Source: Dimorphilus gyrociliatus (lineage: Eukaryota > Animalia > Annelida). From it: a DNA stretch of 64,000 bases. The translations under genes and the position numbers were made by a program. Shown here piece after piece: positions 6,645-8,461 of the stretch (positions are counted from its first letter, which is position 1; each line of letters opens with the position of its first letter). The DNA is taken from NCBI GenBank assembly GCA_904063045.1, contig CAJFCJ010000006.1, forward strand, positions 372,001-436,000, written 5' to 3'. The notes under the pieces were generated by a model. That model had not been told where the DNA came from and did no database searches. It saw only the letters and a program-made list of their open reading frames with translations.

Positions 6645-6833
6645 TTATTCAGCAGTATAGTCGGCATCTTCTGGATCATGGCTCGCTTCTGCAAACCTTA
6701 CCTCATTCTTACCCATATCGAAAGTTGTATAAAAATTCATTAGGTATGCGTCTCCTAATATCCAAGTTGGAACACTATCAATATTAAACCTGTGAGCACA
6801 AATCCCAACAATGCATCTTTCATTGTAGCCACC
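6645..6833 (-). CDS. Second aspartic-protease C-terminal exon (candidate alternative last exon of CTSD)
   Basis: After acceptor tctctag the phase-0 frame reads GGYNERCIVGICAHRFNIDSVPTWILGDAYLMNFYTTFDMGKNEVRFAEASHDPEDADYTAE* (63 codons). It aligns without gaps from the Cys onward to the canonical last exon (C..G...WILGD...Y T.FD.G...V.FA). It is absent from the ORF track because it has no start codon giving 60 or more aa. Confidence 0.8.
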   Translation of the reverse strand, partial: GGYNERCIVGICAHRFNIDSVPTWILGDAYLMNFYTTFDMGKNEVRFAEASHDPEDADYTAE

Positions 6834-6982
6834 CTAGAGAATAATATTTTCAAGATTCTTAATAAGCTCTATTATATTTAAATTCATTAGAGTGATATAT
6901 GTGTAAAATATAAAATGTCGATCCATAGTATTATATAGTTACTAAAACATATAAGGGTGTTAAAAGCAAGATGAAATAAAGT

Positions 6983-8461
6983 TTAAATAAGAGGATCATC
7001 AAAACCGGTGTGACGATTATATTTCGGTATGGAATAGTACTCTTGAGCCATTCCGCTGGTTTTAGCGAAACCAACACTGTTACTTCCTAAATCAAATTTC
7101 GTATAGTAACGCCCGATGAAAACGTCGCCAAGGATCCAAAGGGGTCCTGCTGGTGGGGGAATATCCATTCCCATGAAACCGCTAAGGCATATTGTTTGAC
7201 CGAGTTTAGAAATCTGTGAGATAAGCCAGTCGTAAGAAAGCGAGATTTTAAAAATCTGGTTCGGTTAAGAGCGAATTTATTACCTCAAGTACGTAATCTT
7301 TTCCCTGAAGGACGAATTCCCTTCCAGCTAGAATGAAAGATATTGTGGGTAGAGAAGAAATCTTGCTACAATCAATTGTGTATTCTCCAGCAGCCAAGGG
7401 AGTCGCACCTATTGCCTTTTGGATTTTAGCAACTTCGGCAGTTGGTCCTGCAATCAGGCTAGTTCCAGTATCTGCAATAGCTTGGCAACCTCCGACACAA
7501 GCCTCAGATGATTCCCCTCCAATCTTAATTCCGTCCATTTTAAATTGCCAGTAGCCTTGTCTGGTGACTGGTAGGTTAGTAAAGTTGCCAGTGTAATATT
7601 TTGGATCAGTTCCCCCAAAGAGTAGTTCACCTCCAACTTTAGAATCAGGATTTCTGTTTAGATAGAAAGAGAAAACAGGCTCATCTACAACTTTTTGTTG
7701 AACCATAGAATAGAACACTGGTAGAACGCCATCAACAGATATAGTCTTATATCCTAAGCCTAAAATACCATCAAATTTGGCTGCAACGAATGCCATACCA
7801 GGTTCACTAAGAGCCTCCGCAAAAACTTGATTTTTAACTTTAAGACCATTTACAGTAACTGTGTCGTCACTAAGAAATCCTGATAGGCTCCCCGAACCAT
7901 ACTGAATAGCAAACTTCGTTCCATTCTTTTGATACGTGCTGGATTTTGTACTATCATATTTGTTGTGTAACACTGATAAGAATAAATGAGTTTTACGAGG
8001 AAAGTTTTCAATTTCGTTTACTTACAACAAGCAATATTGCTCAAGTGACATTTCTTTGATGGAACCCATAAATTTGAAGATCCAGTATCGAAAACTACCT
8101 TAAAGTTTTGAGGGGGAGTTCCTATGCTTATCTCTCCATAATATTGAGCCTATTTTTCAATGGTGGAAGATAAGATACATTTAAAAAATAATAAATATAC
8201 TCATACATCCAAATAGTTAGATAAAGGTTCAGGAACACCGTTGCCAACTGCAAATCTATTCCAATAGATATCTTTTAGTCCTTGGGAATTGGTGCCGACT
8301 TCCTGAAACCTTCTTCTGGCAGACCGAAACCGGTGTAATTGTACTCTGTAAAAATCGCTTTGTCATTCTAGTATGTGACAGAAAATGTATTTATACCTTT
8401 TAATTTCTGCACTGTAACATGCAGCAATTACCATCAGCAAAGTTAAGAAAAATAACTGCAT
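6983..8461 (-). CDS. CTSD: Cathepsin D-like lysosomal aspartic protease (canonical isoform, last exon 7213-6983)
   Basis: Signal peptide [18 protein letters not shown] at 8461. Contains [31 protein letters not shown], the second catalytic motif AIADTGTS, and [22 protein letters not shown] with the proline loop. Confidence 0.95.

Follow-up and report, generated by a model that had tools for sequence, protein, structure and literature searches.

Does the cathepsin D-type gene of the annelid Dimorphilus gyrociliatus end in one way or in two? Cathepsin D usually counts as a housekeeping gene with a single product, the variety of A1 proteases being ascribed to gene duplication. In the 64,000-nucleotide stretch of genomic DNA analyzed here (the window, to whose positions all coordinates refer unless another contig is named), RNA contigs and a reading of the sequence place a cathepsin D-type gene on the minus strand at 6645-8600 (Table 1). 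A preliminary description, made from the letters alone, had proposed that one phase-0 donor in this gene can reach two phase-0 acceptors, so that one gene would make two C-terminal versions of the enzyme by the choice of its last exon, and had offered as an alternative that the second of these exons is the surviving end of a lost tandem paralogue. The results below argue for the first proposal. We regard it as likely that this is a single cathepsin D-type gene with two tandem homologous last exons chosen by splicing, most likely a diverged local version of a pair found in the Lophotrochozoa.

The proposed arrangement of the 3' half of the gene is borne out by the sequence. Exon 4 closes at 7284 with a full codon (...CTTGAG), and the gtaata behind it gives a phase-0 donor (GAG/gtaata, 7283/7284) that can be paired with an acceptor at 7213 (...ctcacag) or with one at 6833 (...ttctctag). 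The exons behind these acceptors, referred to as exons A and B, are homologous, stand in tandem, are both in phase 0 and have this single upstream donor in common. Both frames are intact, as seen by translation and by matches to the Pfam Asp family; exon A is closed by a TAA at 6985-6983 and exon B by a TAA at 6647-6645, the latter overlapped by an AATAAA (6649-6644). Introns at the locus are 51-70 bases long, and the D. gyrociliatus genome is reported to have a median intron of 66 bp, little DNA between genes and long UTRs, and to lack operons and trans-splicing (PMC7854359). At the other end of the gene, the 5' UTR is alternatively spliced (8476-8660, minus strand), the acceptor at 8476 being joined to donors at 8534, 8593 or 8651; an 8600/8651 joint in the 5' UTR is also present in X6, one of the RNA runs described below.

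Table 1. Features of the cathepsin D-type gene and its 3' flank in the window
Feature	Position	Strand	Content and evidence
5' UTR exon	8534..8600	-	RNA contigs and joints in X1 and X6; alternative upstream 5' exons joined from ~8593 and ~8651
Exon 1	8397..8476	-	ATG 8461-8459 and signal peptide; joints 8476/8534 and 8345/8397; translation
Exon 2, propeptide	8206..8345	-	RNA joints; translation
Exon 3	8026..8148	-	First catalytic motif DTGS; RNA joints; Pfam Asp positions 1-43
Exon 4, large common body	7284..7972	-	Second catalytic motif DTGT; Pfam Asp E 3e-81; RNA joints
Intron upstream of exon A, 70 nt	7214..7283	-	Joint 7213/7284 in X1, X6, X2 and X4
Exon 5A (exon A), proximal last exon	6983..7213	-	76 codons and stop; DIPPPAGP loop; 26-residue C-terminal tail
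Spacer from exon A stop to exon B acceptor, 149 bases	6834..6982	-	Contains the exon A 3' UTR; lies inside the 450-nt intron of the B form
Exon 5B (exon B), distal last exon	6645..6833	-	62 codons and stop; proline-loop motif absent; second Cys; joint 6833/7284 in X6
Exon B 3' UTR and/or 5' region of next gene	6393..6644	-	X6 contig, ORF reconstruction, alignment

RNA contigs from four public runs of four studies (X1, X6, X2 and X4) were aligned to positions 5800-8700, and both of the junctions foreseen in the preliminary description were recovered. The joint between exon 4 and exon A (7213/7284) was found in all four runs, and the exact joint between exon 4 and exon B (6833/7284) in one X6 contig. 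The B joint reads CT..AC on the plus strand, that is, GT..AG on the strand of the gene, and skips 450 bases including all of exon A; it is carried by a single contig of a single run, with 31 letters on the exon 4 side. X6 is nearly identical to the window and is cDNA, since every intron is spliced out of it. Its coverage at 6833-6888 is zero, which indicates that exon B begins at the predicted acceptor and that exon A transcripts end near 6889, and the RNA contigs with exon A end at ~6889-6903. The contigs bear neither strand nor poly(A) ends, and the depth of X6 is one figure per contig, so that they report joints and give no isoform ratio. In X1, a low-depth contig (6660-6897) reads unspliced across the exon B acceptor, perhaps as pre-mRNA or as part of an A-form message with a long 3' UTR; a G>A variant at 6792 in this contig is a synonymous change of His codon 14 in exon B. 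The A and B forms each have their own stop, and the 3' end of the B form is masked because its contig merges with the next gene.

This merging bears on a reading in which the 7284-to-6833 joint comes mainly from read-through, conjoined transcripts of cathepsin D and its neighbor, with exon B as a bridging exon. The next gene encodes an ILVBL/HACL2-like thiamine-pyrophosphate (TPP) enzyme with an N-terminal membrane helix (4232-6392, minus strand; ATG at 6392-6390; first introns 6200-6264 and 6002-6147). The X6 contig with the B joint (contig 13) runs from exon 4 into exon B, is continuous from 6832 to 6265 and is then carried by two splices into the TPP gene, as a conjoined transcript would be. 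A contig that covers two genes, however, does not show a single transcript. Given the compact genome, with its short intergenic regions, long UTRs and lack of operons or trans-splicing (PMC7854359), overlapping UTRs are to be expected and are the simplest reading of the two-gene contig. Exon B also has its own conserved stop, and the constraint at the protein level described below would be pointless in a bridging exon. Finally, a 24-nt block at 6481-6458 (minus strand; TGGCCTTTGCTTTTTGAACCCACT), identical at 24 of 24 positions in a related species and lying ~70 bases before the start codon of the ILVBL-like gene, is probably a core promoter or 5' UTR element of that gene, and suggests that the TPP gene has a promoter or 5' UTR of its own. 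Some share of the two-gene contig is possibly read-through RNA; that such RNA is the main source of the B joint we consider very improbable.

The two spliced reading frames encode preproenzymes of 415 (A form) and 401 residues (B form). Signal peptide, propeptide, both catalytic aspartates and two N-glycosylation sites are common to the two forms, and both catalytic motifs of peptidase family A1 (DTGS at residue 89 and DTGT at residue 277) lie in exons that both isoforms contain. The Pfam Asp family is covered at positions 1-43 by exon 3, at 41-269 by exon 4 and at ~272-315 by either A or B, all above cut-off. Exon A matches the C-terminal end of the family with E 6e-11, and exon B matches positions 275-315 with E 8e-8 and 32 bits, the cut-off being 19.9 bits. 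Exon B is 39% identical to exon A over 46 residues, and exon A is its only kin within the genome; together with the Pfam match, this argues that exon B is not a chance open reading frame.

What separates the isoforms is the tail together with the last ~50 residues of the fold. In going from A to B, GFMGMD is exchanged for GICAHR and DIPPPAGP for FNIDSVPT, and a second Cys, which is conserved in the relative, is added. The features that the preliminary description had listed as kept all hold: the Cys-to-Trp spacing is 17 residues in both exons, and exon B retains WILGD and the F-D-x-G...FA end. The Cys in question, the predicted partner of the last disulfide, is also found in both orthologues. 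From pepsin-family structures, we take the swapped segment to supply the Cys that pairs in the last disulfide, the S2/S1' side of the substrate cleft (GFMGMD in A, GICAHR in B), the proline loop with the WILGD strand, and the C-terminal tail. Because this segment would border the S2 and S1' pockets and contain the proline loop, an altered substrate preference is expected. Searches of the worm's own genome found no second cathepsin D-type gene and only a BACE-like gene. This BACE (beta-secretase)-like gene is the sole other A1 peptidase signal in the genome and lies on a separate contig (L007, G000:C7:785080-788208; gene parts at L007:862-1053 and 2258-2395), one of its exons matching human BACE1 with E 1e-10.

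Is exon B still under selection, or is it the decaying leftover of an exon duplication or of a vanished tandem paralogue, spliced only as noise? The closest database relative of exon 4 (85% identity) was found in genomic Logan contigs of other runs, and its gene order is the same as in D. gyrociliatus (Rad1, cathepsin D, TPP enzyme). An orthologue of exon B lies in the same place (L008:6230-6409); it has an AG acceptor, is in phase 0 and reads open to a stop of its own, so that frame, acceptor and stop show no disablement. R-C-I-V-G-I-C, P-T-W-I-L-G-D, N-F-Y, F-D-M and both Cys residues are kept. In this two-species comparison, exon B has a pN of 0.21-0.25 and a pS of 0.75-0.81, and its identity by codon position is 0.79/0.79/0.40. 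The species are far apart, with a pS of 0.7-0.8 and a third-position identity of ~0.4 in all exons; pN and pS are given rather than dN/dS because synonymous sites are saturated and dS is not estimable. Exon A (pN 0.085; 87% amino-acid identity to the relative) and exon 4 (pN 0.088) are more constrained, exon B changing ~3 times faster at non-synonymous sites. The DNA between exons A and B is unalignable with the relative, as are the flanks of exon B, and the AATAAA at the exon B stop is not conserved there.

With a pN far below pS, a frame that is kept and flanks that cannot be aligned, exon B behaves as a selected coding exon and not as a dead relic. A remnant would account for the low identity of exon B to exon A, for its very long branch in the tree described below, for a B joint that is seen in one RNA contig only and for the failure to find exon-B-specific kin among 1.84 billion representative proteins. 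What it does not account for is that frame, acceptor, phase, both Cys residues and the core motifs are kept despite saturated synonymous sites, that pN is far below pS while the adjoining non-coding DNA is unalignable, and that other phyla use homologous last exons in tandem. We think it highly unlikely that exon B is such a remnant. The joint in X6 and the purifying selection seen against the relative instead uphold the claim that one gene yields two C-terminal versions through the choice of the last exon.

The preliminary description had further characterized the two versions as with and without the proline loop, and this stands in part. Exon A fits the DxPxPx(G/A)P motif that precedes the WILGD strand (PMC3886914; DIPPPAGP, and DIPKPAGP in the orthologue of the relative), and exon B does not (FNIDSVPT; FTIDRQPT in the orthologue). 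The motif is therefore lost from exon B, but the loop is not deleted, its length being the same as in exon A. The motif has been linked to non-secreted lysosomal enzymes and its loss to digestive ones, with exceptions (PMC3886914, PMC5736985).

These observations invite the more specific reading, a sub-case of the preferred one, that isoform A serves as the lysosomal cathepsin D, whereas isoform B is pepsin-like and either secreted or digestive. It would fit the presence of the motif in exon A and its absence from exon B, the tie between motif loss and digestive enzymes in the literature (PMC3886914, PMC5736985), the lack of a separate digestive paralogue in the genome searches, and the structures nearest to exon B, which are loop-less entries named 'Cathepsin D (A01 family)' and gastricsin, human cathepsin D being only a few bits behind. 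Against it, a loop-bearing enzyme occurs in the gut lumen (PMC3886914), the A and B forms have their signal peptide, propeptide and both glycosylation sites in common, and the loop is retained in both exons of other lophotrochozoans, which argues that the switch did not arise for a lysosomal/digestive purpose. Such a division of labor between A and B appears doubtful. Loop-less digestive cathepsin D-like or pepsin-like A1 peptidases (those of cyclorrhaphan flies and triatomine bugs, and vertebrate pepsins) resemble isoform B in lacking DxPxPx(G/A)P while keeping the catalytic core; they are, however, separate duplicated genes with documented gut expression, whereas the worm relies on the choice of an exon within one gene.

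To place this architecture, we compared the locus with the cathepsin D genes of other lophotrochozoans. Many of the top matches of exon 4 are RefSeq proteins annotated as 'lysosomal aspartic protease isoform X1/X2', and an alignment of cluster members showed that the isoforms of a pair are alike to a point just past DY[VI]L and differ only in what follows, the point of departure being the same intron position as in the worm. Such pairs are present in Watersipora (bryozoan), Lingula (brachiopod), Lineus (nemertean, three isoforms) and, among molluscs, in Patella, Liolophura, Argopecten, Saccostrea and Crassostrea/Magallana. On genomic DNA, seven of these lineages were confirmed to carry the last exon in tandem, and an old oyster gene model (P0140) joins both copies in series. 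Like the worm, the lophotrochozoan RefSeq pairs consist of one cathepsin D gene with tandem last exons, a phase-0 intron after DY[VI]Lx and separate stops. Because these seven lineages carry tandem copies of this exon alone within one gene, duplication of an exon explains the worm locus better than the loss of a gene, and the earlier suggestion that exon B is what survives of a lost tandem paralogue is not upheld.

The worm differs from the other lophotrochozoans in the extent of divergence. Their copies are mostly 73-84% identical (56-74% in Lineus), whereas the worm's A and B are ~39% identical, and both of their copies have the cathepsin D-like loop (the Lineus distal copy being two prolines short), whereas the worm's exon B is without the motif. 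Unlike the other copies, exon B also has a second Cys and no close kin beyond the sister species. A word-based search with the exon B sequence by itself gave no match, nor did a scan of metagenome contigs for exon B. A profile of the two exon B orthologues run against the 1.84 billion representative proteins detected no exon-B-specific family; it matched generic A1 C-termini at 38-52 bits, higher scores coming from proteins with two matched stretches. The Lineus longissimus gene (L016:10029-11724) has three tandem last exons, the distal loop being two residues shorter (IEVPAGP), so that a pair with and without the full loop exists outside the worm too. Full-text literature searches turned up no account of such an isoform pair or of alternative last exons for cathepsin D, and a Rhodnius paper considered as a precedent was set aside since it describes intron retention.

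Do these pairs go back to one duplication? A residue signature distinguishes the two exons by their order. In the x-x-G-x-T-x-C segment, the residue before Gly is hydrophobic in the proximal exon of seven of seven lineages (A, F, L, M, L, L, M) and small or polar in the distal exon of all seven (G, S, A, Q, G, R, Q). Exon order was predicted blind from this signature for Liolophura and Argopecten and was correct in both cases, and exon A of the worm, which reads K-L-G, is of the proximal type. A tree of last-exon peptides (54 columns), in which most forks stay open and exon B sits on a very long branch, does not decide orthology. In it, the Patella proximal exon groups with the oyster proximal exons (SH-aLRT 85), and the Patella distal exon groups with both Argopecten exons (90), the oyster distal exons falling in no clear place. 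These groupings weakly suggest, mainly on the proximal side, that the split into proximal and distal exons predates the divergence of gastropods and bivalves. Judged from the peptides, the pair is probably old and partly homogenised within species.

The same tree can be read in favor of exon B being a dinophilid-specific duplication, unrelated to the pairs of other phyla, which would in turn have arisen by separate duplications: the two Watersipora exons pair together, the exons of Lingula and Lineus are not sorted among themselves, and most forks between phyla are open. Yet the position and phase of the intron are identical everywhere, the exon-order signature holds in seven of seven lineages including the two blind tests, and the proximal exons of Patella and oyster group, the distal side offering only Patella with both Argopecten exons. 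The likeness of copies within a species could, moreover, stem from gene conversion. Independent origin is quite possible, though we lean against it; the worm pair is most likely a local, strongly diverged version of the proximal/distal last-exon pair that occurs across the Lophotrochozoa. More tentatively, the pair could be a single ancient invention, made before annelids, molluscs, brachiopods, bryozoans and nemerteans split and kept as a specificity switch for more than half a billion years, with the worm's distal exon remodelled into a pepsin-like, loop-less version so that one gene does both lysosomal and digestive work. We view this full scenario as rather unlikely.

How would the choice between A and B be made? 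In the mechanism we favor, the spliceosome would pair the one phase-0 donor (7284) with the acceptor at 7213, removing a 70-nt intron, or with the acceptor at 6833, removing a 450-nt intron. The A form would result when the near acceptor is used and a 3' end is formed near 6890-6900, and the B form when the near acceptor is skipped, so that the two acceptors and the proximal 3'-end site would in effect compete. Isoform B would be an active protease with an altered substrate preference and perhaps a different destination. As in other isoforms that arise from tandem exon duplication, the alternative exons are homologous and of the same phase, each mRNA contains one of them, and one structural module differs. 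Internal mutually exclusive exons follow steric or RNA-structure rules, whereas the worm's exons are terminal, with their own stops and presumably their own 3' ends; being terminal with separate stops, they would couple the choice of splice site to 3'-end formation. When the two species were searched for conserved complementary RNA arms with a possible role in exon choice, only AT-rich chance pairs came up, none of them common to both. The mechanism is of a known kind, and the same architecture is already in the database annotations of other phyla, the worm being an unusually diverged case.

By its exon choice the worm gene exchanges the module expected to form one wall of the substrate cleft. 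Annotations from at least four other phyla contain this swap too, apparently without its having been discussed, which makes the two forms a natural, conserved enzyme pair to compare for specificity, pH behavior and sorting. Among these pairs the worm's goes furthest, with the proline loop in one version and absent in the other, and its compact genome without a detectable paralogue offers a clean system for the role of the proline loop and the C-terminal tail.

Two further stretches at the locus are conserved. The 3' part of the 70-nt intron (7248-7222, minus strand) is identical to the relative at 25 of 27 positions, far above the neutral expectation, and includes a CTTAC/TTTAC branch-point-like site; as a speculation, this block might combine the branch point with a regulator of the A/B choice. 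The tail of exon A (6983-7060; L008:5915-5989 in the relative) has a motif of roughly EY..[ILM]P[KR][YE]N....[FY]D[DE].L, which recurs on proximal-type cathepsin D ends that are probably lophotrochozoan (P0018, P0047, P0070; L018:11361-11606), and the scallop proximal last exon ends in ...NIPRY. This motif may be a conserved C-terminal extension or a sorting signal that the proximal exon alone supplies.
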